A stretch of 64,000 nucleotides of DNA from Dimorphilus gyrociliatus (Eukaryota > Animalia > Annelida), in contig CAJFCJ010000046.1 of NCBI GenBank assembly GCA_904063045.1, forward strand, positions 40,692-104,691. Reading direction: 5' to 3'. A model generated the notes under the pieces. That model ran no database searches. It was not told the DNA's origin and saw nothing but the letters and a program-made list of their open reading frames with translations. The translations under genes were made by a program, and so were the position numbers. Positions 1 through 60,910 of the stretch are shown here, piece by piece (within the stretch, counting starts at the first letter, position 1; each line of letters begins with the position of its first letter).

Positions 1-2335
1 TTGAAGCAATCAGGTAACAATTAATTAATAACTCTAAAAAGTCAAATATGAAATATGACAAACAGATGTAGCAAGAGTATTACAGTTGAAACAATTGATA
101 GTGATGGTAAAGAGTGTAAAGTGACAGATAAATGCCTAAAAGTACCACAAAACTGCCATATTAAGGCAAAAGCAGATAATTCGGCCAGCGCAATGTATTA
201 TCCATTTAGTGGGGTTTGTATTGCTCTTTTATTGGATAAAGTATCATATTGTAATCTTAATGAATCTAGGCTACAAAGTTTTGTGATGATTCTAAAAATA
301 CTCCAGAAAAAGAAAGACATAATTCTGATGCTCCAACACCACAAAATTATTTCTGCGATGGCCAAAGTGCTTGGGATGTTTTAAGGGAATTGGATGATTT
401 TAAAAATGACAATAATCCACCGATTGCTGCACAAGAAAAGATTGATTTCACACCAAATTTTCTAATTTATCGGCAAACTTCAGACAAACTAAATATTGTG
501 CTAGTTCTTGATGTTTCAGGCAGTATGTCAAATGTACCGAGTGGAGCTGTAAATCCCTTAAGGCAGATTGTATATTCAGCCTGCATTGAGTACATAACTG
601 ATTATGTGGTTGCTGGTGATCGCATTGGTATTGTGCAATTTAATAAGCACTCCCTTCTCTTACAAAGTTTAATAACTGTAACGAGTACGAATAAAGCAGA
701 AATCCTACAGAAAGTTCCTAACTATGCTTCTGGTGGAACTTCCATCAAGTCTGGAGTACAAGGCGGAGTAGCGGCGTTAGGTAAGGCTGCTCGAGGAGGT
801 ATAATAATCCTCATGACGGATGGAGAATCCGACAATAACGATTTACAACAAGCGAAAAATATTGCTGATAGCTCAGGCATTACTGTCTACAGCGTGATGT
901 TAACGAGAGATGCGACGCCTTTTCTAAAGGCTATAGCAGACGCCACTGGTGGACAAACGTATTTTACAACTGGACAAACAGTATCCAATAATGAACAATC
1001 GGTTTCTGAAGTTTTACGTAGCATTGGGAATATTCAAGAAGGTCTCCGCTCAAGAACAAATTCCTACAGCCAAAGAGATATAGCAACACAAGTGTCGAAG
1101 AACGTTGTAAATATCCTACCAAGGCAAAAGCAGACGACCCAATTCTGGATTGATCAATATTCTATTAGCTTCTCCCTTATTATATCTACTCTTGTTCATC
1201 CTAATACTATTCAAATTGAGTTGATATCGCCAAATGGAAATCAAGTTGACATTAAAAAGTTTACAAAAATTGATTCCACATCTAATACTATAAAGATAAC
1301 AGTTTCGGCCTCTGTCGGTAAATGGAGATACATTGCTTCAAGTGTATCCGGAAGTGTTAATACGAGAATAAATGTTGACGTCATATCCTACACCAATAGC
1401 CCAAGTTCTCAAATTTCATTCACAGGAAAGTTTAAAACCACTTTTATCGACTTTAACAAAAATATCGAAGCTGTAAAGATCGAATCGATGCTGTTTATTG
1501 GAGATTACGCAATAAGAAAGGCTGAAGTTGTGGCACATGTATTCCTCGCTGGTATTCTTGTTGAAAAAGTTCAACTTAATGACGACGGTATTGGTGCCGA
1601 CGCGTTTGCTAATGATGGAATATACTCTGGATATTTTTCCAACATAACCAGCAATGGAAGATTTACTGCAAGATTTACCGCCATCAACTATGAATCAAAA
1701 GCATTCTACTCTACAATAAAACAATCTGATGGAATAAGTGACCACTCTAATGGCTGCTCTCCACCGTCATCAGAGATAAAACTTTTAAGTCCATTTGAAA
1801 GAATAACAGCAGGAAATTTTCTGGATGTTGAAAACTTCAAACAAGGAGTAGACTATTTTCCACCAAGTAAAGTTAAAGATTTAAAGTTCACTGGTGTGAA
1901 TACAAAAGAGCAAGTCATATCATTCGAGTGGACTGCTGTTGGTGACGACTGGAATTTTGGAGTTGGTAAGTTCAGTTTTAAATTGCTACATAATTATCGT
2001 TTTGATACAAGAAATACTGAAATGTAGCAACAAAATATGACCTCCGAAAATCATCATCGTCAAAGTCTCTAAGAGAGAGATTTAATTCAACTACACTACT
2101 CGAAGGTATTGAAAATTTAAAGCCAAGGAAATCAGGCGAAAAAGAGAAATTTCAAATGAAAATTTTAGAGAATTGCAAAGATAGCTTTTTCGTTGGGCTT
2201 ATGGTTATCGATGATGCTCATCGTACAAGTAAACTGTCTAACGTAGTATCAGTTCCATACCATTGTGGATCTAGTACCATTAATATCCAAATTGCGTCTA
2301 TTCTTGCTGTATTACTAAGTTATATCTTTCTGTAA
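1..2335 (+). CDS. CLCA: Calcium-activated chloride channel regulator-like protein (CLCA_N tail, vWA, beta-sandwich/FnIII region); 5' end outside window
   Basis: Splicing GT-AG introns 14-65, 214-269 and ~1967-2027 gives EAIRCS..., FCDD..HNSDAPTPQNYFCDGQSAWDV, the vWA MIDAS motif DVSGSM, LNDDGIGADAFANDGIYSGYF and DYFPPSKVKDL..WTAVGDD. All are CLCA hallmarks. The protein ends in a hydrophobic tail (LRLFLLLLLLSYIFL*). Confidence 0.85.
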
Positions 2336-6369: not shown

Positions 6370-9300
6370 TTATATAGCAAACTTTTTCTCTCTCTGATTG
6401 AAGCAGTGTCTTTTGTAACATAACTGCAAATGATTTATTATAAAAATATAAGGGTTAAGTAGTGAATTTAATGGGATAAGGCTAATGACAACTATAGTGT
6501 AAATATCATTTTTTATACTTAGAACAATTAATTTGGATAAAATTGCTGAGAATGTGAAAAAAAAATGAGTTAGATTTATAAGAAATTTATAAAATTTACA
6601 CTAAACATTCTTACAAAGAAGAGAAACCGGAAACCAGCATAAAACATTTGAAATTGTCATAAGAATAACATTTGTTGATAAACTATTTCTATTCTTTAAT
6701 AAACTAGTTGATTTGATTCTTAATGCTAATTTTCCATATAAAATGCATATAACAATGCTTAAAAAGAAAATAAATACTCCAAAAGTTAATAGTGAAAAAA
6801 TCCATCCTTCAGTCCTATCACTTCTAATTTGAATGTTAAAACATATTGTTGATTTTGAATAGTAATTCTATTTTAAATGAAAAAAATATAATCCAAAAAA
6901 TAATTTTTAAAAAATGTTTACACTATAAATGATAACTGGTAGAGTTGATATAAATATTAGCAAAGATGTTCCTACAAGTAGGATTATTCTTTTATATTTG
7001 ACTATAGCTGGAACTTTGAATAAATGCATGACAGCTTCGTAATGTTCCGTCGCTAAACCTAAAATTGAACATATTGAAAATAATAGTGAAAATGTTACCA
7101 GAGTGCCAAGAATTGAGCAAGTTGTACTAAATCTCCAATTATCCTCATTTTCTAAATAACTTGTACCAGAGAAATGAATATCGGCAATTGCAATAGAAAT
7201 TATATAAATTCCAGTTAATAAATCACCAACAGTTAGACAAATTCTAAATGATTTTGATTTCAATTTCACAAAAATTGATAAAAACAATGTGATTAAGTTT
7301 CCTATCACACCAAATGTTCCAAGAATCCAAAATAATATTCTTAAATAAATTGATGGAATTATATTTTCACAAGTCAGAAAATCATTTGGATTTGGTACAC
7401 ATTTCACTAAATTCTCTAAAACTTTCCATCCTAAACAACACAATTGGAAATTTTCATTTTCAATTTTATTCAACTTTTTCATATAATTTGTAAAATATTT
7501 TATATATTTCACTGGAAATTTTGTATTCTTCATATACAAAACTCTAAGATTTATTAGATTTTTAAATGAAAACTTTTCAATAAATTTTATAAAACAATTC
7601 TCCATTTTGAATATTTGTAAATTTTTTAAATATTTAAAAATATATTTTCTTGTAATTGAATGAATTTTTGTTGTTGAAATATCAAATATTAATAGATTTT
7701 TCATTGGAAATTTGAAAATTTTATCCAATTTTTCAATAGGATTATTTGATAAATTTAATTTTTGAAGAATGGTAAATTTGTTGTTGTTTAAAAATTGTAA
7801 TTTTGTTGAATTTGTATAGACAATATGTAATTGTATAACATTTGGAAAATATATATTTTTCCATCTATCTAATAGATTATTAAAAGAGATTTTCATGATA
7901 AAAATATTTGAGAGAATTTTCATATTTTCTATTCTTAACATAAAATCTCCATTTAAAATTACATGTTTAAAATTTGTATCTAAATTTATCATTTGTAATG
8001 ATTTTTTTGTTTGACAATCAATTGAAAATGGATTTAAATATTTGCAATTCTTCAAGGAATTTTGTTTAGGAAAATCACAAAATAATTCATCACTTCCTTT
8101 TTCACAATCTAATTTACCATTGCAAAATTGATGGTGTGCAATTATTTTACTCTCATTTCTACATTTAAAATATCCAGTTGGTGTGTAGCTGTCTATTTTT
8201 TAAAAGAAAAATGGATTTTTTATTCTACATGTTTAAGCAATATGGAATTTTTTTTATATTAACCACAAAATAATTCATCATCATTGTTATAGCAATGATT
8301 GATTCCATCACAAACTCTTTCAATACTTATGCAAAATCCAGAATAATAACATTTATATTGGAATTTTGAACAATTATGATTGTCACAATTTTTCAATAAT
8401 GAATAAGGATATCTAGCTTTTGTTATCATATTGCCTTTTGTATCATACTCTATAAAACACTTTTCAAGTGTTAGTATGTCTAATTTATCTTTTTTTTTAA
8501 AAACATTTTCACATTGATTTTCATCTTTTCCATCAAAACAATCCAACATAAAATTACATTGTTTCTCTTTAGTTAAACATATTCTGTCACATTTTAATTG
8601 ATATTTATCATTACAACCTATAAGAAATATTTATTTAAATAATTCATATTGCAGTTGGATTTTCAGAGAAAATATTCCCTATTTTTGGAACTAGATGAAT
8701 TAAAAAAAAAGCACACATCCTAAGAAATTCTCAATGGAGGTTTTTTTTTATTTTTTTACTGAAAAAAACTGGGAATATTTTATCTTTGTATTAAATATTG
8801 TATACTATTTTTATAGTATTTCTCTATTGCTTCCTCTTCATTACAAATCTCATCAGTTGAATCAAAGCAATTGATTTCATTATCACATATATTCTCAATA
8901 TTAATGCATTGTCCATTGTGGCATTGACTGCAAAAAAATGAATGATTTCTTTCTTGGAATGTTTTTCAAAGTTATTGTTAATAACAATTTATCTTTTCTT
9001 ACTAACCTTTCTCCACTTTCATTACACAAATGGAAATCTTTGAATTGGAGTGTTTTTTTTAAATATTAATTGCACTTTTTGTTTAATTAAAGAAAAAAAT
9101 ATTCTCACAACAAAACCTTTCATCTGATTGATCAGAACAATCATAAACAAAGTCACAAAGTAAAGAATAGCTAATCATTTCATTATTTGTTAAACATTGA
9201 ACATAATTGAATTTATTATGATCACAATCAATTTCGTCTTCATTAGAGATGCAATCATTTATTCCATCGCAAACGTAGACATAATTGATGCAAATTTTAC

Positions 9301-15814: not shown

Positions 15815-17724
15815 AAACAGCTTGATTCCAATGGAATAAACAGCCTGTTAGTGTAACACTTTCCCAATTGTCTAATGCAGCTTTCCATACTGCTCTTTCA
15901 TAGTCCAGAACAATTTTCTTTGGTGTTTTGTATTCCAAAAGTTCATTTAGTGTCTGTTAATAAAATGTTATTTACTTTGAAAAAATTGTATTTTTATAAA
16001 TACCCTTACCCTAAACAAAATATTGTATGCTTTTTTCTTCTTTGATGTCATAAAAGCAAAGAGTAGAGGAACTTGTTTTAATGCTCCCTCTTTCTTCAAA
16101 AATGAATGAATAGAAAACAGCTGTTTGAAAGGTTGTTTTACAATGCTAAAAGTTCCATCCACATACCAAATTTTTGAAACTGAAAGCAGATTGAGTTGCT
16201 TCAATGTGGAGAAAATAATGATTCTTTCACCATTTTCAAAAATATCTTTTCTTAAAAAATCATCTGGTATGAAAGTATTATTTAAAAGAAAATTTCTTCC
16301 AATAGGTTCAGTAGGCTGAGTTTTTCTTCTATGGTAATTAATCATTTCTTTACAAGTATCTACCTTCAAGATATTGCCCATATTTGCATATGGGAGTATA
16401 GCATTTTCAGCTAATCTTTTTCCACTTACATTAATATTACATTTTCCACTTTGTTTTGCTGTCAGTTTAATTTCAATGTTTTGCTCTAAGTTTTTTTTAG
16501 GTGGATGAATGTGTGATTTAGAACCTAAGTGAAAATTGCTACCTCTTTGAATTATACTGGCAGGGCATCTGATTTTCTTGTTCCTGACACTACATATCCA
16601 AATAGTACTACTTTTGTACTGTCCTTTTATAGTAAAAGAATTATTATTGTGTACAAGCAACTTTTTTTCTCTTTGACTTCCATTTTCAAATACTTTGAAA
16701 TGACCATCTGCCTCATCAATCTCCTCTGGTAAACTTTCAAAGGAATCCTCAACATCTTCAACAGTTGGTATTCTCTCATCATCCAAAGTTGCCTCCATAG
16801 TTGATGCAGCACAGTTGATTTCATCTGTGTTCATGTCTTTTAAAGGTAGCTCATTTGCTTCAATAGCATCTGCTGAGAAATGAGAAACAACTTGTTCATG
16901 ATCAACATCCATAGAAGTAACCGTAATGTTTGCTAATGTCTTATCTTTCTCTACAGCATTTTTTATTGGCTCTTTAATATTTCCCTCAATAGTAGATTCT
17001 TTAGTTGCATCTTTGATTGTACAACTATTATCACACCTTCTCAAAACAATTTTCAAACTTCTGATTTGAATAGATGAGCAAATGGAGCATAATCCATCTA
17101 ACAAAATTAAACATAAACATTAAGATTTAAATATGAAAAATCTAACCTGATAAGCATGTCCAATGAAGTTTGTGAGAACAATGAGAACATGTTCCTTGTT
17201 TTAGTTTATTAATTTTTTTTCTACATTCAAAGCAGAATTTTGCCATGTTGATAAATTTCTTTCAAATACCTGTTATGTCAAAGATCATGAGAATTAAAAA
17301 AAAATTGTAAGATATATACATGATTTTAAAGAGACTAATATTTTTATCAAAACAATTGTTACTTTTGAAGGATTACAATGCAGAAAATCACTTAATTCGA
17401 ATAGCTAACAATTCAATTTTCACAACAAATCAAGTGGTAAAACATTACTCTACAAAAAAAACTGGTAAAACAATTTCTTTCATTATCACTCAGAGATTAC
17501 AAATAATAAATACAAACTACTTCATAAATTATTTTCATATATTTTGCATTTTATTAAGCATACTGTAAACTTCTAGTACACTTCTGGGCGACTTCTGTCA
17601 TAGTCCTGGGTGACTTCTATCACACTTCTGGGCGACTTCTGTCACAGCTCTGGGCGACTTCTATCAATGTCTGGGCGACTTCTGTCCTGGGCGACTTCTG
17701 CCCTGGGCGACTTCTGTCGTATTC
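15815..17724 (-). mobile_element. Phantom-like MULE, copy A: PHD-FLYWCH-MULE transposase open for ~445 codons over 3 exons, 3' truncated
   Basis: Exon 17246-17147 plus a 49-nt intron completes a C4HC3 PHD. FLYWCH (WIC..C..HIH), YVDGTF, then exon ~15958-15817 with LDYERAVW..GCLFHW. Element end GTCGTATTC at 17724. Confidence 0.85.
17580..17720. repeat. Subterminal tandem array of CTGGGCGACTTCTRTC (~7 units)
   Basis: Direct repeats with short spacers immediately inside the MULE terminus. Confidence 0.85.
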
Positions 17725-23406: not shown

Positions 23407-23840
23407 TCAATGAAAAATTTTATAGAATTTGTCTTGAAAACTAATTTGCCCTTGACCTCCCATGAGGAAAAATTTTGCCAAAGTTTTTAGAAAATGCTCA
23501 AAATATTGAAAAATTCTTTTCTGACACATCACTGAGCTGGGAGATGGATTCTCCTGTTGTAGTGCATACACTAGACAAAGTGATATCAGTACCATCTATA
23601 CCAGTCTAAAAACTTCACAAAACACTTTGAAAGATATCTAATTTATTGCCAGAAAAACAAATCAATGTACTGCAGTGTTTTGTAAACCTTTCTGCAATAT
23701 TCACATCATTTTGCAGTGCTACTCTAAAAGATTGATTCGAAAAAATCTGCAATGGTTTAGTAGCATGTTCTGATATTTTGGAACATATTACATTCAAACA
23801 CATTTCCCTAACTGCCAAACAGATTAAACTTACCAATTGA
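23407..23840 (-). pseudogene. Relic of the N-terminus of the RNI-like LRR family
   Basis: SLICLAVREM (BC-box-like). IDGTDITLSSVC aligns to FSCDILPLTSVT of the 35148 protein. Several stops. Confidence 0.4.
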
Positions 23841-26759: not shown

Positions 26760-27077
26760 CTAGTTCAATCAATACTACTGTAGAATAGTGTTGAGGAATA
26801 TATGTTAACACTTGTTTTTTGCTAGGTATCATATATTTTTATATTCTATCAAAAATATGAATTGAAAAGTATATTTTTATTATTTTAAAGAGTTGTCTGA
26901 AGGTTTTCATAGAAAAACTTTTTATTTTTTATTTTATTTATTTTTACTGTTTTAATTTAGTAGATAAATCAGAAAAAGAACTAAAATTAAGAATTCATTA
27001 AAAAGATTATCACTCAACTATTATAGAAGAGATATAGGAAACATCTCAGAGCAAGCATCTGTATTTAAACAGCTAGG

Positions 27078-27255
27078 TTTACATTTACAATCAGACAATC
27101 TACTCAACTTAAATTTTTCTTGGTGTGAGTTGAATGTTAAACAAGCAATAACACTTGGAGAAGCTTTTAATCACTGTTCTTCATTAGAAAATATAGAATT
27201 ATGTCATAATCCAAACATGAGAGATGGCTTTAAAATGATTTGTGATGGACTGTAA
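27078..27255 (+). pseudogene. RNI-like LRR relic
   Basis: LNFSWCELNVKQAITLGEAFNHCSSLENIELCHNPNMRDGFKMICDGL*. Confidence 0.65.
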
Positions 27256-27479
27256 ACTTTTTCAGCAGGTTAAAATGAGGTTGACAGAAAACGTCCATGA
27301 ACTGAAAGAAAACAAAACTTAAAATAAATTTCATTTAAATGTTAATATATGTTGAAAAACAAATTAATAGAAAAATTTTTATAATATGGAACTTTGGGTT
27401 TACAAAATAAATTGTGTATTGATTATTTGTAAACAACTATAAAACAAAGAAACTTTTTTTCAAGTTTTACAATGAATGA

Positions 27480-33713: not shown

Positions 33714-35147
33714 ATGTTCTATATAAGTATGAACATTAAAAAAAAAGAACCATCATAAATGGAGTTACACCTGTTGTTACTGATATCAAAAATGCCAACA
33801 ACATCTTAGTCTTTGACATATCTCTGAACTGACAGTTTTTGAATAAAAACTGATATAAATTTACAAAACAACCACTTTTGGGGAAATGTATCAAAGGTCA
33901 CGTGAAGTTTTGTATTGGAAAGCAACATAAAAAAATCATAAAGGCTCGGATTCCAATGAAAATTTTGAATAAACATTTCTGGAATAGATATGTCTCACCA
34001 GTCTAATGTCTTTTTTTGTTGTCTAATGAGGAAAAATTTGAGCTATTTGCATAAACTTATGAATATTGTGGAAAAGGGGTTAGGGTTAGGTCAGGACACT
34101 ATCTATTTAATATGTCTTGTAACCAAATCAAGAACAAGAATTTAAAAAAAATGCCCAACATATCTTCAAATTTTCAAGTCTAAAATGACAATATTTATAG
34201 GGTTATCAATTACGTAATACTTTAGGGTTAAAAGTAAGGGTCAGGGTAAAACTTTAAATTCATGCACCTTTTCTGTCATAACCTTGCCTAAATTTGGCAG
34301 CGAGCCAAACTATCATTACGTCAATATTGTTACATTTTTTATGACTGTATAGGGCAATACAGAATGGACTAATGACTGTTACTACTCAATAGGCAGTAAA
34401 GGGAAAAAGAAAGAGTGCTTATGTCAGAATATACAATTAACTTAACATTTCTTTTAAAATACTCTTTTTCCATGTAGCAAGTTCTTATTTTAATTGCTTT
34501 GGTAGATAAAATGGAGTTGGCTTGAATAATCCAGCATTCACAGCAACTTGTACAACTTCTGAAACATGTGTGACAAACATTTAACTCTGTTTAGATATCT
34601 AGCAGTTGTTTCAATGGCTGTCACTGTTGTATCAGTGACATCATTTTATGAATCAGTGATGCAGATTGTTATCGCATCTGTTAATGATACAGTTTATTTA
34701 TGGTCATCTATGCTTTTGTAATTAATCTTCCTCTCTTATAAAAATAAATGGTTTAACCTTTCATTCCTGGTTTAATTATCAAAATCAACATAGTTTTCAA
34801 TGAAAAGGTCTTATAAATTAGACTATAATCTTTTTCAAATTTTTCCCTACATGGAAGATACTTAGATAAATAATTAAAAAAATTTAATTATCAACCTATG
34901 GGGGAAAGATCAATGACTATTCTTTGGCTACAACGGAAATGATCCTCATTTCAGAGATGTTCATTAGAAAAAAAAATACAAAGATTATAAAAAAAAGTGT
35001 TACTAAATAATACAGTATCCACCAGTTTAACAATGGATATGCTGTACATTTTACAACCATATAACCATAAAACCATAGGCGTCTGCTTCTAAATATTTTC
35101 CAGCGTAATTTTATAAATCAAATACATAATTAAAAAGGATCCTTGTA

Positions 35148-37268
35148 ATGTCTGTTAGTTCACTAAAGAATATCTCAATTAAAGGTGTGAGTAAAAATTT
35201 AAACTCTATCATTGAATTCTGCAAGAAAGAAGATGTAAAAATACCTTTCAAACTCGGAAATGAAATATTTGAATATTTCTGCACTGATAATAGTTCACAA
35301 TCATACGGAAATGTTAATATATTTTCTTGTGATATTTTACCTTTGACCTCTGTCACCATAAACAATAAAGAAAAGCTGAGACTTGAAAATTTAAGATTTT
35401 TGAAAGGTCATTCATTAAAGACATTGAACATTTATAAAGGTTCATATAATGAATTACCAATCAGTTCAAATATTGAAAATTTGAAATTGGTGAGCACAAC
35501 ACTGCCTTCCAGTGTCTTTTGTCAATTGGGGAAGGATTTGGCAGATTGTTTCTGCCTAACATCAATAATAATAAGAGATATATATCATATATCTTTTTCT
35601 TCTTTTGAGAATTTATGTAATGGATTAAAATCTTCAAATTGTTCATTAAAAGAAATTGACTTTTCATATTGTGGATTATCAGAAGAAAATGGAAATCTGT
35701 TGGGTAATCTATTAACAGAATGTAAAACTGTAAATATAATAAACTTAAGTTATAATCAACAATTTAAAGATGAATGTAAAAAAATATTTTGTGGATTAAA
35801 ATCATCGTCTCTGTTCTTGCAAAATATCAAATTAAATAGTTGTAACTTATCGAAGAAACAAAGCTTTTGGCTTGCAGATTTATTATTTGAATGTAACGGA
35901 TTAACAAATATAAGTCTCAATGGTAATAGGCATATGTTGGAGGGATTTAAAAAAATATGTAAAAGATTAAAATATTCATCAAATACGTTAAATTCTATAG
36001 ATGTTGGTATGTGTAATTTGACAAAAGAGCAAGCATTTTGGTTAAGTGATTTACTCTTTGAATGTAAATCATTAAATTATATAGCTTTTAATAATAATAA
36101 TGTTATGAAAAATGGACTTCAGAATATATTTGAAGGATTAAAATCATCAGCATTCTCTCTACAAGAAATTTTATTTTTACAAGAAAATTTCAAAGAAGAA
36201 CAGGCCAGTTGGATGGGTGATCTATTAAAAGAATGTATAGGCCTTAAGACAATAAATTTAAACTTTATGAAAACTATTGGTAAAGGATTTGAAAGTATAT
36301 GTAATGGATTAAAATCTTCAGCCACTTCTCTGCAGAAAATGGACCTATGCGGTTGTAATTTATCAGAAGAACAAGGAATTTGGTTGGGTGATTTATTAAT
36401 TGAATGTAAAGTGTTTAATCATTTGCATTTGGGTTATAATAGCAATATAACAGATAATGGATTAAATAGAATATTTAAGGGATTAACTTCTTCATTAGAA
36501 ACTTTAGAGTATATTGATCTATCTGGCTGTAATATAACAGAAAATCAATGTTTTTGGTTAGGTGATTTATTACAGAAATGTATAGGAAAACTTGAAATTA
36601 ACTTGACTTCAAATACTCAAATGGGAGAAGGATTTAAGAGGATATGCTATGGATTGAAATCTCCTTCTCTACAAAGTATCCACTTCACTTTTTGTAATTT
36701 ATCAGAAGAACAAGGAATATGGCTCAGTGATTTATTATTTGATTGCACAATGCTAACTGCTATAAATTTAACACAGAATGGTACTTTGAAAAATGAAATT
36801 CTCAATGTCTTTAATGGATTAACATCTTCATGCAACTCATTACAACAAATTAGTTTGGCTGAATGTAATTTAACAGAGGAACAAGGAGTCCATTTAGGTA
36901 ATTTATTACTTAAGTGCAAAAGACTAACTCATATAAATTTGACTAATAATAAAATATTATCAAAAGGATTTAAGAGAATATGTAATGGATTGAAAATGTC
37001 ATGTTTTACTTTAAAACATATTAATTTATCATATTGTGATTTATCAGAGGAACAAGCATTTTGCTTAGGTGATTTACTATCAGAATGCACAGCTTTAAAA
37101 GATATACATTTGTGTTCTAATTGCAATATGAAAAACGGATTTGATAAAATATATTCTGGATTAAAATCATCCAAATTCACTTTACAAAACATCAGTATCC
37201 TTCAATGCGATTTGTCAGAAGAGCAAAAGCTTTCGTTAAACAATTTAGCACCTACAATACAAGCCTAA
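35148..37268 (+). CDS. Single-exon RNI-like leucine-rich repeat protein, 706 aa, with an N-terminal VHL-box-like motif
   Basis: Uninterrupted ORF with ten ~57-aa double repeats (GLKSS..L..I.L..C.L..EQ..WLGDLL..C..L..INL..N). N-terminus SLKNISIKGV..IPFKLGNEI. Confidence 0.9.
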   Translation: MSVSSLKNISIKGVSKNLNSIIEFCKKEDVKIPFKLGNEIFEYFCTDNSSQSYGNVNIFSCDILPLTSVTINNKEKLRLENLRFLKGHSLKTLNIYKGSYNELPISSNIENLKLVSTTLPSSVFCQLGKDLADCFCLTSIIIRDIYHISFSSFENLCNGLKSSNCSLKEIDFSYCGLSEENGNLLGNLLTECKTVNIINLSYNQQFKDECKKIFCGLKSSSLFLQNIKLNSCNLSKKQSFWLADLLFECNGLTNISLNGNRHMLEGFKKICKRLKYSSNTLNSIDVGMCNLTKEQAFWLSDLLFECKSLNYIAFNNNNVMKNGLQNIFEGLKSSAFSLQEILFLQENFKEEQASWMGDLLKECIGLKTINLNFMKTIGKGFESICNGLKSSATSLQKMDLCGCNLSEEQGIWLGDLLIECKVFNHLHLGYNSNITDNGLNRIFKGLTSSLETLEYIDLSGCNITENQCFWLGDLLQKCIGKLEINLTSNTQMGEGFKRICYGLKSPSLQSIHFTFCNLSEEQGIWLSDLLFDCTMLTAINLTQNGTLKNEILNVFNGLTSSCNSLQQISLAECNLTEEQGVHLGNLLLKCKRLTHINLTNNKILSKGFKRICNGLKMSCFTLKHINLSYCDLSEEQAFCLGDLLSECTALKDIHLCSNCNMKNGFDKIYSGLKSSKFTLQNISILQCDLSEEQKLSLNNLAPTIQA

Positions 37269-38559
37269 ATTAGAGAATATTTGACATTTTATTGGCATGA
37301 AATAGACATAAACATAAACACAAAAGATGCTTAAATAATAGCTTTGATATTATGTATCTTTCAAGGTTAATTGTTTTAATTTCTTATTAATAAATAATAA
37401 AATATAATTTCACTCTGTTATCGTTTCACCTTCCTGTCTTTACATTCTAGAATTTTTAGGATAATAATGATTTTTCAAAACTATCAATATTTAATTGTAA
37501 AATATTAAATAGCAATTTTGAACACTAACTTTATTACTGTTGACAGAAGTTTCTATTTTTAGAATCTATTGGGTAATACTTTGACATGTTAAAATCATGA
37601 TGTGACTTTCATGCATGATTATATCTTTTAGAGATATTGTTCTCTGAAGTAGTAGGCCAAATTTCAATATTATATTGAACAGTATTATCATTTATTTTAA
37701 CTAATCTGTTAAAAGATTAAGATTAAAATAATGTATTCAGTATTCAGTACAAAATCAGAAATTGCGTAATAAATAGTTTTGATTTTATTGGGCAATATTT
37801 CGAAATATTATGTTTTATGTCAATATTATGACGTGTATTTTATCAATATATATATATATAAAGAGAGTGAGAGAGAGACTCAGAGATATCATAGTCTATT
37901 TCAGTTGTAGTGTCAACAGCAAAGGAGGGAAATAATGGACAAAGCAGAAGCTTTGAAATGGAAAATTTGTCTTGGAGTAGTAGCGAATTCATTACAGGTT
38001 CCTGGAGAAAGTGGGAATACTGCTAAGTGGAAATATCAAAAAGAGAAAATATCACCAAATTGGCAAAAATATCCTAAGGAGAAGTCATTTACAATTTGGA
38101 GCAAACGTCCTCAAATAAGAGAAAAAGTCCCTTTGAGAAGACGCTCTGAACGAGGAAAAACTCAAAAGAAAAGATAATGCAATACTTTTTTACTTCACAG
38201 TTGACTGTATGATTCTAAACCTTGTTTACAATTGTTCTATTTGAAACATTTTGTGTGTTTATGATGTAAAACAATTACAATTTCGAAAAAAAAAATGGTA
38301 ATATGGACACTGTAAAAATTTCAGAATCATATTTTATTTTCTTTTATCAAGTCAACAGTGTATAGGCTTAAAAATAGGTATATAACAAGTTTATTCTCTA
38401 TATATTATAGAAAATGTTAAATCTAAATATATATTTAAAAAGTAATTTGAGCAGAGGATATATTTTAAAAGATAAATAGCATCGCAGACAAGTAGATTCA
38501 AGGGTTACAGGTGAAACCATAGCCATTGGTGGTGAATCTCTTGCTCTGACCAAGTAAAA

Positions 38560-39300
38560 CTGTTGCTGTTGATACATCATTGGAAGAACACTTTGTAGCT
38601 CTACAGAAACTTATGGAAAGAATCAAGGAAAAAGTCTTTAGATTTAAACTGAGCAAGTGTGCATTCTAACAATAATCAGTTCAATTCCTTGGTCATAGAA
38701 TTACACAGAAGGGTATTGAAACTGATCCTGAAAAGATTCAGAAAATAAAATATGCCAAATTACCTATGTTTGCAGATACTTTATTAAGTTTTGTAGCATT
38801 TTGTGGTTATTACAGAAGATTTATCAAGGACTTTGCAAAAATTACAAAACCTTTGAGAGAGTAATTAAAATTAGATCAAAAAACTGAAAAATTGAAATGG
38901 ACTAAAGAAGCAGAGGAGGCTTATCAGATACTAAAGAAATCCATGACAGAGCCACCTATACTTCAAATACTTGATTTTACCACACCATTTTATTTAACAA
39001 CAGATTCTTCCAATTATGCAGTTGGTGCTGTTCTGGAACAAGAATGGGAAGAAGATGGAAAGAAAATAAGAAAACCAATCTCTTTTGCTTCCAACCTTCT
39101 AATCAATACACAACTAAGATATGCAGCTTATCAAAAAGAATCTTTTGCTGTGTATAGGGCTGTAAAAAAATTCTCCCATTATTTGCAGTATAAGAAATTT
39201 TTTTTTATAGTGACCACCAAAGTTTAGTACAAACATTTGTACAAAACAAACTAAATTCAAGTACTGTTAAATGGGTTATGGCACTTTTGGATATGGATTT
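38560..39300 (+). mobile_element. Ty3/Gypsy pol fragment (RT thumb and RNase H), decayed
   Basis: KLSKCAF..VQFLGH..GIETDPEK..FCGYYRRFIKDFAKI..LTTDSSNYAVGAVLEQ..ISFAS, with in-frame stops. Confidence 0.85.
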
Positions 39301-39311
39301 TGAAATAATAT

Positions 39312-40729
39312 ACAGTACAGGTAACCTATTTTTGAATGCCCAGCTATTTTCTATATTAGTTAAATTATTTTTTATTTAACATTAACTTTACAATCCAATA
39401 ATTAGAAATGGCAATTGCCACTTTGTAATCAACATATGCAATTAATTAAATCTTCAAATTTCACTGTTTGAGTAACAAAAAAAATTTTATTCTGAAAAAA
39501 TCACGAAAATTTATTTCAAGAATTGAAGTAGGATAAGAATTTTAAAAAAAGTTAAAAAGTGCCCAGAATTAGTTTGGATATGAGAAAATTGGTTGTGGTA
39601 AAGAGGAAGGAGAAGATGTCAATGAAGGAAATTGCAAAACAATTAAAAATTTCCAAGGGATCTGTGCATTATATTATAAAAAAGTTCCAGAAACATGGAA
39701 CCATAAATAATTTATCCAAATTATGTACCCCAAGGCTTTTAAGAGAAAGTGAAGAGAGAAAAATTAATCAAATTTGTAAGAAAAATCCATTTTTAACTGC
39801 CAGGAATGTGCTTGAACATTCGGGACTAAACACAAAAATTTCACTGTCAACCTGCAAAAAGATTTTGCAGAAAAATGACCTTAAAGGCTATGTTGCAACC
39901 AGTAAGCCGGCACTAAGACCTTACCATGGAAGAAACAGAAAAGCATTTTGTAATTCGATGCTAGACAAGAGTCAAGAAGATATAAGTGAAATTATATTTT
40001 CGGATGAAAGTCGGATAGAGCTATATCCAAAAAGGAGAATATGGGTCCATAGGGGCATTGACAAACGGTATGATCCAAAATACACCAAAAAAGCTATTCA
40101 AACAGCTAATGCTTCAATATCAATATGGGGGTGTATAAAAGCTGATGGGACAAGAGCTATAAAGCTTTATAATGGGTATATGTACAGCATTCTATATCAA
40201 GAAATTATTGAGGAGAAGCTCTTTCCAATTTTTGAGGTAGGCAACCTGCTTATGCAGGATGGTGCCAAATGCCACACATCCGCCTCTACAAGGAGGTTTC
40301 TGGAAAGAATCAATATTGAAATTTTGGAAGACTGGCCTTCCAGAAGCCCAGAATTGAATATTATTGAAAATTTATGGGCTTACTTAAAAAATAAACTGCA
40401 GACCCATGTTTTACAGACCATTTGTGGAGGGCAGTAGAAGAGGAGTTTAATAACATACCAAACTCTTATATTACAAATTTATACAAAAGCTTCCATAAAA
40501 GAGCCAGATTATGTCAGAAAAAAAAGGATATAATATAAGATATTAAAGAAAAAGAAAAAGTGATTATTTGAAGTAGAATAATGTATATGTTAATAAAATG
40601 TAAAAATAAACATATTTCTTGCCTTTTCCAACAACAATTTTATCAGAATTTGTAAAGTTCAAAAATAGGATATCAGGCACTTTTTGTGATTTTTTCAGAT
40701 TACAAAGTGGCAATTGCCATGTCTAATTA
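39312..40729 (+). mobile_element. Tc1-like transposon, near-complete DD35E transposase with a C-terminal frameshift
   Basis: Paired-like HTH, FSDESRIEL, IWGC, QDGAKCH..WPSRSPELNIIE. 32-bp inverted repeats at 39399-39430 and 40698-40729 (1 mismatch). TA-CAGT start at ~39312. Confidence 0.85.
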
Positions 40730-57900: not shown

Positions 57901-58141
57901 GAAAACCTTATTTTCCAACTCAATATTTGCCTATCTACAATTTTTTGGTCTGTATTTTAGCAATACCTTTTTACTCCATCTCCATAAAACATAATATTCC
58001 ATAATGCTGTAGTTAATTATAATACAGTCATTTGTTAACTCAATAATTCATAGTCTTCTAATGCATCATTCAACATTTGATACGTTTAATTTTCATCTAG
58101 AGTTGCATTAGAAGAAGGAAATATATTTGCAGTGTAGAAAT

Positions 58142-59065
58142 ATGGTCTATTCAAACATTTACATCTTCAGTTTTGCAGTTTTTAATCAAGTTATTGGATT
58201 TCTTTTGAATAGTAATTTAATCCTTATCTCTTTTCTTAATAAAAATCTTTGGAAATTACATAATTTTGGTGTGACAGTATTGACATTCACAGATGTTTTC
58301 TACTCATTAAGTGTATTGCTCTTGATTTTGCTTTATAAGGAACAATTAAAATATTACCATTGTCTTATTGCAGTTCAATTTATATTTATGATAATTACAG
58401 TATCATCTTTAACCTTGACCTTAATTACATTTGAAAAGTTTGTGGCAGTTGTAAAACCATTAACATTCTATAAAAATTGGACAATGAAGAGAGCTTTTTT
58501 CTCACTTTTCTGTATATGGTCAATTAGCTTTGTCATTTGCTCATTACCTTTTATGGGTTGGAACAAATACAAGGCCATTTTGAAGGTCAATAATACTTTT
58601 CAATGTAACGCTTTCAGTGTTGTCTCTTCTTCTTATCTTTATTTATGGCTATTTACTACTGTTTTACCAAATTCAATTACCAGTTTACTATTATACATTC
58701 CCATTCTAAGAGCTGTACAGAGGCACAGACAAGTAATTTCTGATCAATCAAATAATGTTAATAATATAAATTCTGAAGGGAGTAGTATTGGAACTTTAAC
58801 CTGTCTCTTGGCAATTAACTGTTTCTCTTGTATTCTACCAGCAGTCTTTGTTGTTGCTAACAATAAGAGACTGACAGAAAATTATGGTTTATCAGAGGCT
58901 AATTATGATTTAATGGTTGATATTGCAACAGCAATTGGTGCTTTAAATCCAACAATACATCCACTTGTTCATGGTTATACTAAATCATCAGTAAGACTTG
59001 ACACAAAGAAATTTTACCTAAAAATACTTAGAAAGATTACTTGTAAACAAACATTCAGAAAATAA
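58142..59065 (+). CDS. Orphan single-exon rhodopsin-like GPCR
   Basis: Seven hydrophobic segments; TFEKFVAV at the DRY position, LPFMGWN, ECL2 Cys, HPLVHGY in TM7. Confidence 0.85.
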   Translation: MVYSNIYIFSFAVFNQVIGFLLNSNLILISFLNKNLWKLHNFGVTVLTFTDVFYSLSVLLLILLYKEQLKYYHCLIAVQFIFMIITVSSLTLTLITFEKFVAVVKPLTFYKNWTMKRAFFSLFCIWSISFVICSLPFMGWNKYKAILKVNNTFQCNAFSVVSSSYLYLWLFTTVLPNSITSLLLYIPILRAVQRHRQVISDQSNNVNNINSEGSSIGTLTCLLAINCFSCILPAVFVVANNKRLTENYGLSEANYDLMVDIATAIGALNPTIHPLVHGYTKSSVRLDTKKFYLKILRKITCKQTFRK

Positions 59066-59405: not shown

Positions 59406-59594
59406 ATGTTTATTTTCAGAAATTATGATTTTGTAAGATTTACAAAGCAGAAAAAAGTTGAATATAAAATCATGAAGAAATTAATGACATTACCATTCGT
59501 GCCCTCTGATCTGATAGAACCAACATTTAAGACTCTTAAAGAAATATATCCAATTGAAATGAAGTCTCTATTTAAAGAAGTGGGTTTAATATGA
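59406..59594 (+). mobile_element. MULE transposase fragment
   Basis: MKKLMTLPFVPSDLIEPTF motif. Confidence 0.6.
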
Positions 59595-59639
59595 TTTGTG
59601 GAGAACTTGAAGCCTCATGCAATACTTTGAAATCAATTA

Positions 59640-60910
59640 CTGTTGTTTAGGATAATTTGAATGATAGAGAAGAGCAATGATGCTTGAATATACATTTCAA
59701 ATCTGTTCATCATTAAATTTTATTAAATTATCTTGGAATAAGAATATGAGAGATGGCTTTAAAAATATTTGTGATGGACTCAAAAACCTTCTCTTATACT
59801 TTAAAATCAATCAATGTAGCTTCATGTGAGTTAAATGCTGATCAAGCTAAGATGTGAGGTGAATTATGAAAAAAGCTGTTCATCATTAAAAGATATTGGG
59901 TTATCTGGTAATGAGAAAATGGGATATGTATTTAGAAATATTTGTGAAGGACTGAAAGCCTGCTCCAACACTTTGAAATCAATAAATGTAGATTAGTGTA
60001 AGTTGAATATTAAGCCAGCCATGATGTTAGGGAAAATCAATTCAGAAATGTTAATGGAAAACATTTGTTTAACTGGTAATGAGAATGTTGGTGAAATATT
60101 TTAATTTATTTGTGAGGATTGCAATGTCTCCTCCAGGATTATTAAAACAATTGCAAATTGGTGTAATTTAAGTGCTGAACAGGCAATGATGTTGGAGAAA
60201 ACATTTAAAAACTGTTCAGCATTAGAAAACATTTGGTTATATAATAATGAGAATATGGAAGATGGATTCAAGTTTGTTTGTAAGGGACTCAATACATCTT
60301 CCAATACCTTAAAATCAATTGATATAAGTTGCTGTAACTTGAATGCTGAACAAGCAGAGATGCTTTGTCAAACATTACATAAGTCATCATTTTTAGAAGA
60401 TATTAATTTATCTTACAATGATAGCATGGGAAATGGATTGAAAGTGATTTGTGATAGACTCCAGTTCTCATTCAATACATTGAAATTAATTTATGTATCT
60501 TGCTGTAATTTGAATGTTCAACATGCAATGATACTGGGGCAAACATTTAAAAACTCTTTTTCAAACATTGAACACATTAAGCTAAATGACAATATAGATA
60601 TTGGAGATAAATTTAAAATGGATGTGGTAGAAAATGGCCATAAATGTATGGTTTTACCCTAACCCTAACCCAGCCCTTGTTTTTGCCTAACCTTTTTGAA
60701 TACCCCTAACCCTTAGATGGGACCCTCCTAAGAACATATCAACAGTTATCTTATTCCTCCTAACCATTTCCCAGGCTGAAATCTAACTTTCAAATATTTC
60801 ATTTATGGTTGTTTTCGACTGGTCCCATTTAAAATGATTCGTGAAGGACTCCACATCTCCTTCGATACTTTACAATTAATTCATATAGCTAGGTGCATGT
60901 TAAGCACTAA
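59640..60910 (+). pseudogene. RNI-like LRR pseudogene interrupted by a MITE
   Basis: Repeated GFK.IC.GL..SS.TLKSI....C.LN.EQA units, with several stops before 60186 and an open stretch 60186-60619. Confidence 0.85.
60620..60826 (-). mobile_element. Mutator-type MITE with CCCTAA motifs (subfamily A), young copy
   Basis: Perfect TSD ATTTAAAAT (60611-60619, 60827-60835). Nearly identical to the reverse complement of 30949-31162. Confidence 0.92.

Follow-up and report, generated by a model that had tools for sequence, protein, structure and literature searches.

The 64-kb stretch of Dimorphilus gyrociliatus DNA analyzed here (contig CAJFCJ010000046.1, positions 40,692 to 104,691; hereafter the window) contains an intact, intronless gene (35148..37268, plus strand) whose product is most likely a ubiquitin-ligase substrate receptor from a set that has expanded in this lineage. 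The open reading frame (ORF), identified from the ORF list of the 64-kb window, starts with ATG and runs uninterrupted for 706 codons, and all of its closest relatives begin at the same methionine. The encoded protein is composed of a VHL-box-like head, short leucine-rich repeats (LRRs) and ten repeats of the ribonuclease-inhibitor (RNI) type. We are confident that the head is a VHL box of the ZYG11 type, and consider it reasonably probable that the protein works as a substrate receptor of the Elongin BC-Cullin-2-Rbx1 ubiquitin ligase (CRL2); its binding, ligase activity, substrates and role are what we infer from the comparisons given below. An N-terminal VHL box of the ZYG11/ZER1 kind, placed before LRRs in a multi-copy intronless family, had been proposed earlier from the letters of the DNA (the original prediction), and this proposal is supported by several independent computations.

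The head spans residues 1-62 (35148..35333, plus strand) and consists, in the AlphaFold2 (AF2) model, of four helices (residues 6-16, 18-28, 34-46 and 53-58). It carries two short motifs on the same strand: (i) SLKNISIKGV (residues 5-14, 35160..35189), which fits the BC-box consensus (S,T,P)LXXX(C,S,A)XXXphi and is the putative contact helix for Elongin C, and (ii) IPFKLGNEI (residues 32-40, 35241..35267), which fits the Cul2-box consensus phiPXXphiXXXphi and is the putative contact for Cullin-2 (both consensus sequences from PMC4878042). The two assignments are based on the consensus fit, on conservation and on the alignment with ZYG11B. The coordinates originally predicted for both boxes, the 17 residues between them and the overall span 35160-35267 proved to be exact.

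A fit to these regular expressions (regexes) is by itself weak evidence, because both patterns are loose and common in shuffled sequences; the signal is carried by position and conservation. When the 706-amino-acid (aa) protein was shuffled 20,000 times to estimate the chance expectation, the BC regex occurred 1.1 times and the Cul2 regex 0.26 times per shuffled protein. The BC regex followed by the Cul2 regex was found anywhere in the sequence in 1.2% of the shuffles, and with a start within the first 20 residues in 0.055%.

Conservation of the motif across paralogs, the check set by the original prediction, was clearly observed in an alignment of 123 relatives with a mutual identity of <= 50%. 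Leucine 6 was conserved in 121/123 sequences (98%) and position 14 was occupied by I, V, L or F in every one of them. Position 10 was C in 65, S in 27 and A in 9 relatives (together 82%), S or T was present at the first position of the BC-box in 62%, and N17 was retained in 97/123. The Cul2 regex was satisfied in 115/123 members (93%): P33 was conserved in 117 (95%), positions 32 and 36 were I, L or V (hydrophobic in over 90%), and position 40 was I in 98 and L in 20. Outside the two boxes, F59 was found in 114/123.

Sequence homology of the head points to the ZYG11/ZER1 family. An eight-sequence profile of residues 1-100, searched against 1.84 billion representative proteins, matched the protein P0140 with an E-value of 1.3e-5 in this collection (profile columns 2-97 on residues 25-117). 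P0140 represents the first exon of a genuine, intron-containing ZER1/ZYG11 gene (L005:235-2841, Logan assembly SRR23372228); it reached 39.2 bits with the Pfam model LRR_Zer-1 (cutoff 27), and three exons located downstream of it matched Pfam ZER1-like_2nd collinearly (profile 4-71, 112-178 and 265-314, E 1e-10 to 6e-15). In a BLASTP comparison, residues 1-160 of the window protein were aligned with P0140 in register from V3, with 25% identity over 95 residues and an E-value of 2e-5. A non-circular comparison, in which the profile of the 62-residue head was made only from the 85 members with a length of 430 aa or more, so that P0140 itself was excluded, gave an hhalign probability of 81% (P 1.2e-5) and an hmmsearch score of 18.9 bits.

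The same kinship was found among proteins of known structure. When a 160-column profile of the 123 sequences was compared with the PDB, human ZYG11B was the best natural protein, with an E-value of 7.4e-4 that is partly due to the LRR columns. The profile segment 'SLkelClkkI' was aligned with ZYG11B 'SLLDICLNFL', i.e. with S17-L18...C22, and the profile 'iP' was aligned with F50-P51. In ZYG11B, L18 and C22 contact Elongin C, and F50, P51 and V54 contact CUL2 (bioRxiv 10.1101/2024.06.24.600508). The eight-sequence profile of the head plus LRRs retrieved only noise from the PDB, and Pfam scans of the heads detected none of the F-box, SOCS-box or VHL families, only scattered LRR models. A language-model Atlas search with residues 1-100 returned a Zer-1-like LRR protein (0.83) and LRRC41 (0.82), which we treat as leads only. 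No similarity was found to PRAME, which the original prediction had cited next to ZER1/ZYG11: searches of proteins, of PDB sequences and of folds listed neither PRAME nor LRRC14, and the kin of the head is ZYG11/ZER1; a distant kinship with PRAME is possible despite this missing weak match.

The predicted fold leads to the same family. The AF2 model of the first 160 residues, computed on the 123-sequence alignment, had a pLDDT of 91.4, and a separate model of the 62-aa head (pLDDT 73.5) contained the same helices. With the longer model, a Foldseek search retrieved nothing at E <= 1e-3; it was superseded by an exhaustive comparison with VIA-align, which yielded a cluster of tied LRR matches (Z 8-10). 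Within this cluster, ZYG11B in its EloB/EloC complex was the only match that covered the model from residue 1. In the case of 9lk2_A, 151/160 residues were aligned (model 1..160 on chain 13..186) with Z 9.1, a root-mean-square deviation (rmsd) of 3.2 and 18% identity, and the match to 9bid_A was equivalent. F-box-LRR structures could be aligned only from residue 12 or 31 onwards (FBXL17, Z 9.2).

In the comparison of the head-only model with 48,161 chains, the first rank was taken by the VHL box of ZYG11B (13..79; Z 5.4, rmsd 2.9, 60/62 residues aligned), which was the only chain at Z >= 5. The N-terminus of APPBP2 (8..63) in CRL2-APPBP2 ranked third (Z 4.4, rmsd 2.3), and no F-box protein was present among the top 50 rows. 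Despite its small Z-score, this match between a predicted structure and ZYG11B is telling by its specificity.

The window protein thus shares several properties with ZYG11B, ZYG11A and ZER1, the CRL2 receptors of VHL-box-LRR-ARM architecture: (i) a BC-box and a Cul2-box in a head of three or four helices, with LRRs directly after it, (ii) detectable sequence homology over the first ~100-150 residues, together with the best fold match, and (iii) conserved counterparts (L6, position 10 and P33) of the contact residues L18, C22 and P51. In contrast to these receptors, it has no ARM/ZER1-like_2nd domain, the part of ZYG11B that reads Gly/N-degrons, and ten 57-aa LRR units of the RNI/NLR type stand in for it; the linker between the boxes is ~6 residues shorter and the gene lacks introns. 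Scanned with Pfam, the 706 aa matched LRR_6 only, and neither an ARM domain (ZER1-like_2nd) nor a NACHT domain was detected; a tblastn search of the window with the ARM exons of the ZER1/ZYG11 gene on L005 found nothing. Since the domain that defines ZYG11/ZER1 is absent and RNI/NLR-type LRRs are present instead, the window protein is not an ortholog of these genes, but a protein in which the ARM domain is replaced.

Two different LRR regions follow the head. Residues 63-149 (35334..35594, plus strand) form short irregular LRRs that prolong the ZYG11-like N-terminal module, with strands at 68-72, 92-99, 111-118 and 139-143 in the AF2 model; the BLASTP alignment with P0140 reaches into this region, as far as residue 95. 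Residues 150-706 (35595..37265, plus strand) comprise ten ~57-aa units of the ribonuclease-inhibitor/NLR type, assigned by repeat alignment and by Pfam LRR_6, and constitute a putative substrate-binding solenoid. The ten RNI-like repeats described in the original prediction were confirmed, with GLKSS anchors at residues 159..671 and a truncated tenth unit. Their alignment gave the consensus ..GF..IC.GLKSS..SLQ.I.L..CNLSEEQ..WLGDLL.EC..L..INL..N, in which LRRs of 28 and 29 residues alternate (57 aa per pair) and carry the LRR_6 signature.

The nearest named matches of this region outside the annelids were the LRRs of fish NLRP12 and NLRC3 (E 6e-17 to 1e-4), and the 28/29-residue alternation and LRR_6 are shared with ribonuclease inhibitor and the NLRs (NLRC3, NLRP12). 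Unlike the NLRs, the window protein has no NACHT, PYD or CARD domain, and a ligase-docking head takes the place of the nucleotide switch. It also resembles the F-box-LRR proteins (SKP2, FBXL17, TIR1/COI1), which combine a small helical docking head with an LRR solenoid, give similar fold scores for head plus LRRs and offer precedents of large lineage-specific expansions; however, its head has no F-box signature and, taken alone, aligns with the VHL box, so that the adaptor would be Elongin C and not Skp1. A third comparison is provided by TRIM-like RING-LRR paralogs, exemplified by the Logan protein P0008 (1156 aa), in which a RING finger (residues 15-56) precedes an RNI-type LRR array of the same kind (26% identity with the window protein over 84% of the query, E 6e-55). 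This paralog gives the LRR array a second connection with ubiquitin ligases. The RING finger is a direct E3, whereas the VHL box of the window protein would belong to an adaptor-dependent receptor.

The exact product of the ORF is not on record in the public protein collection. Its closest proteins are six full-length proteins of D. gyrociliatus and two from Logan assemblies (33-37% identity, 37% for the best relative; E 1e-145 to 1e-57); all of the named family members (these six, and the three that carry a name among 20 profile hits looked up) are from D. gyrociliatus, and most members of the family come from Logan assemblies (SRR233722xx, ERR142247xx). The search with the head profile matched 162 clusters at E <= 1e-3, of which 58 reached E <= 1e-10. 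The head domain was nearly always located at residue 1 of the matched proteins, whose lengths cluster near 265 aa and at 560-650 aa. Three head-bearing genes or first exons (265-290 aa) are arranged in tandem on Logan contig L003 (1978-2775, 4891-5763 and 8001-8801; SRR23372229, 24% GC), and a tblastn search with the ZER1 ARM exons found nothing there. The family is not mentioned in the D. gyrociliatus genome paper.

The nearest precedent for such an expansion is the zyg-11 family of Caenorhabditis. Most animals have one or two copies of the ZYG11/ZER1 genes, whereas 19-37 zyg-11-like genes, with tandem arrays and including ZEEL-1, were described in these nematodes (PMC3144186). In both cases a CRL2 receptor family has multiplied within one lineage, giving rise to tandem arrays and to new fusions of domains. 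The nematode copies, however, retain the LRR+ARM body of ZYG-11, to which ZEEL-1 adds a transmembrane domain, whereas the annelid family retains only the head and the first LRRs and has exchanged the body.

These comparisons suggest how the protein might act. As a substrate receptor of CRL2, it would use its first ~62 residues, folded as a ZYG11/ZER1-type VHL box, for docking: helix 1 (the BC-box, with L6, S10 and V14) would enter the hydrophobic Elongin C pocket, and the loop plus helix 3 (the Cul2-box, with I32, P33, L36 and I40) would contact Cullin-2 at its N-terminal domain. The head is predicted to be rigidly fixed on the short ZYG11-like LRR stretch, which would continue into the ten ribonuclease-inhibitor/NLR-type units; these units would stand where ZYG11 has its ARM domain and would bind the ubiquitination substrate. 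The family of which the gene is a member comprises at least 162 sequence clusters with a common head and a varying repeat array, and includes tandem arrays and decayed copies.

Several observations weigh against this interpretation, in addition to the contribution of LRR columns to the E-value of ZYG11B and the absence of the ARM domain, which is defining for ZYG11/ZER1. The 62-aa profile of the head alone found nothing significant in the PDB (Rad7, an Elongin C binder, had E 2.4). Pfam LRR_Zer-1 was touched by only 3/123 members, weakly (best E 0.0014), and was not matched in the window protein. The strict BC regex was satisfied in only 60/123 members, mainly because the S/T requirement at its first position is so often missed. 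The fold scores are modest: many LRR proteins tie at about Z 9, and 5.4 is in absolute terms a small Z-score. The weak top matches of Foldseek were the F-box-LRR proteins SKP2, COI1, MAX2 and FBXL17. Moreover, the choice between Cullin-2 and Cullin-5 is not safely readable from sequence.

Some of these points would be accommodated if the head descended from a ZYG11-type VHL box but no longer docked a cullin ligase, serving as an LRR cap or contacting another partner, in which case the protein would be a binder or sensor without ubiquitination. We regard this as unlikely. The low count of strict BC-boxes and the lack of a significant head-only match in the PDB are in line with it; most of the conserved positions are hydrophobic sites in helices, which would be retained in any folded cap, and the window protein has S at BC +4, where C is commonest. 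On the other hand, S is permitted at this position of the BC-box (PMC4878042), and the columns equivalent to L18, C22, F50, P51 and V54 of ZYG11B are the best conserved of the family. Helix 1 is also hydrophobic on more than one face (positions 6, 9, 10, 11, 14 and 18), which suggests an exposed partner surface. It is much less probable that docking to Elongin BC serves to recruit Cullin-5/Rbx2 in the manner of a SOCS box, as in LRRC41/MUF1. BC-boxes are common to CRL2 and CRL5 receptors (PMC4878042), sequence is a poor guide to the cullin chosen, and LRRC41 was among the weak look-alikes of the language-model search; but the second proline of the LPxP box is missing (position 35 is K, S, L, Y, E or N, and proline is not among these six commonest residues in the 123 relatives), and both the nearest homolog and fold, ZYG11B, and the third-best fold match, APPBP2, are CRL2 receptors.

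We consider it very improbable that the head is a divergent F-box and that the proteins, like SKP2 and other members of the FBXL family, are receptors of SCF (Skp1-Cullin-1) ligases. An F-box starts with LPxxLxxxIF, and the IPxxLxxxIF of the head has the same spacing, with the +3/+7/+8 positions after P33 placed as in F-box helix 1; the Foldseek matches and the Z-score of FBXL17 on the 160-aa model agree with this as well. Yet none of the 123 members matched any F-box Pfam model at E <= 0.1, the conserved Trp of F-box helix 3 was not found in their alignment, and IPxxLxxxIF forms the third helix of the model, not the first. Furthermore, F-box-LRR structures do not align from residue 1 as ZYG11B does, F-box proteins are missing from the 50 rows of the head-only fold comparison, and sequence homology points to ZER1/ZYG11. 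Finally, the frequencies of the single regexes in shuffled proteins could suggest a chance match of two loose short motifs without biological meaning, an explanation that we regard as refuted: an N-terminal pair is as rare in the shuffles as stated above, the motif is conserved in 123 relatives, and both homology and fold lead to ZYG11B.

The remaining observations concern the expression of the gene and the rest of the window. Two contigs of run X1 (35111-35891 and 35867-37372) stop just outside the ORF and delimit a probable unspliced transcript (35111..37372, plus strand). Unlike them, contigs of the DNA run X2 extend beyond 37372. This suggests that the ORF is transcribed unspliced, the kind of the X1 run not being on record. 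An intact frame at a GC content of 28%, together with its probable transcription, speaks in favor of the proposed receptor function.

Relics of the same LRR family were found elsewhere in the window, all of them on the plus strand. A degraded headless paralog with RNI-type repeats (59582..60662; tblastn E 7e-20 across three frames) is interrupted by several in-frame stops and shifts of frame, and is open only over the final 158 codons. A single-repeat relic (27028..27285; tblastn E 4e-9) has the translation FSWCELNVKQAITLGEAF...ICDGL*, and a short LRR relic (23715..23822; plus-strand reading FEKICNGLVACSDILEHITF) was matched weakly by tblastn (E 0.36). The original prediction had cited a relic at 23836 starting with SLICLAVREM as a further instance of the motif; this is a minus-strand reading without Met, antisense to the plus-strand relic 23715-23822, and SLICLAV is present on the minus strand only, at 23830. 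No second head was detected by the head profile in the six frames of the whole 64-kb window. One intact gene accompanied by headless, stop-riddled relics is consistent with birth-and-death turnover. The fast turnover suggested originally, like the role in immunity or transposon control, has no basis here other than these degraded copies.

The window has a GC content of ~28% and contains exons of GPCRs (G-protein-coupled receptors) and of VWA, F5/8-C and PAN proteins, as well as transposon ORFs of the Tc1 and MULE/FLYWCH types. At 38452-38800 the summed contig depth of run X2 was ~7,000-7,900, compared with ~80-110 in adjacent bins, which indicates a very high-copy repeat just downstream of the LRR gene. 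A Tc1/mariner-type transposase ORF (39559-40437, plus strand; HTH_Tnp_Tc3_2 and DDE_3) is located 2.3 kb downstream of this gene. Other ORFs encode a FLYWCH zinc finger (15968-17104, minus strand), a complete 7tm_1 GPCR (58127-59065, plus strand), and LRR_4/LRR_8 repeats with the start of a rhodopsin-type seven-transmembrane domain, which is an LGR-like GPCR exon (6907-8055, minus strand).

To our knowledge, expansion of the ZYG11/ZER1 family has been described only in Caenorhabditis, where a toxin-antidote element arose. The present case is one in which the docking head of ZYG11 is detached from the ARM body and has multiplied together with LRRs, some of them in NLR/RNI-type arrays, to at least 162 sequence clusters; it comes from a miniature annelid whose genome is otherwise conservative and compact. 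Should the heads bind Elongin BC, these proteins would constitute a large unannotated class of CRL2 receptors and a natural modular exchange of sensor repeats and ligase heads, and would offer a testable entry into what expanded receptor sets recognise.

That the family serves immunity or genome conflict seems to us a rather doubtful proposition. It would mean that LRR sensors of the NLR type are wired to the proteasome instead of a NACHT switch, with swappable heads (VHL box, RING) and variable arrays by which foreign or selfish proteins would be destroyed. If this were true, the annelid lineage would possess a quickly renewed arsenal whose targets could be pathogen effectors or the products of transposons or toxin-antidote elements, and innate immunity or the control of genome conflict would here work by degradation.

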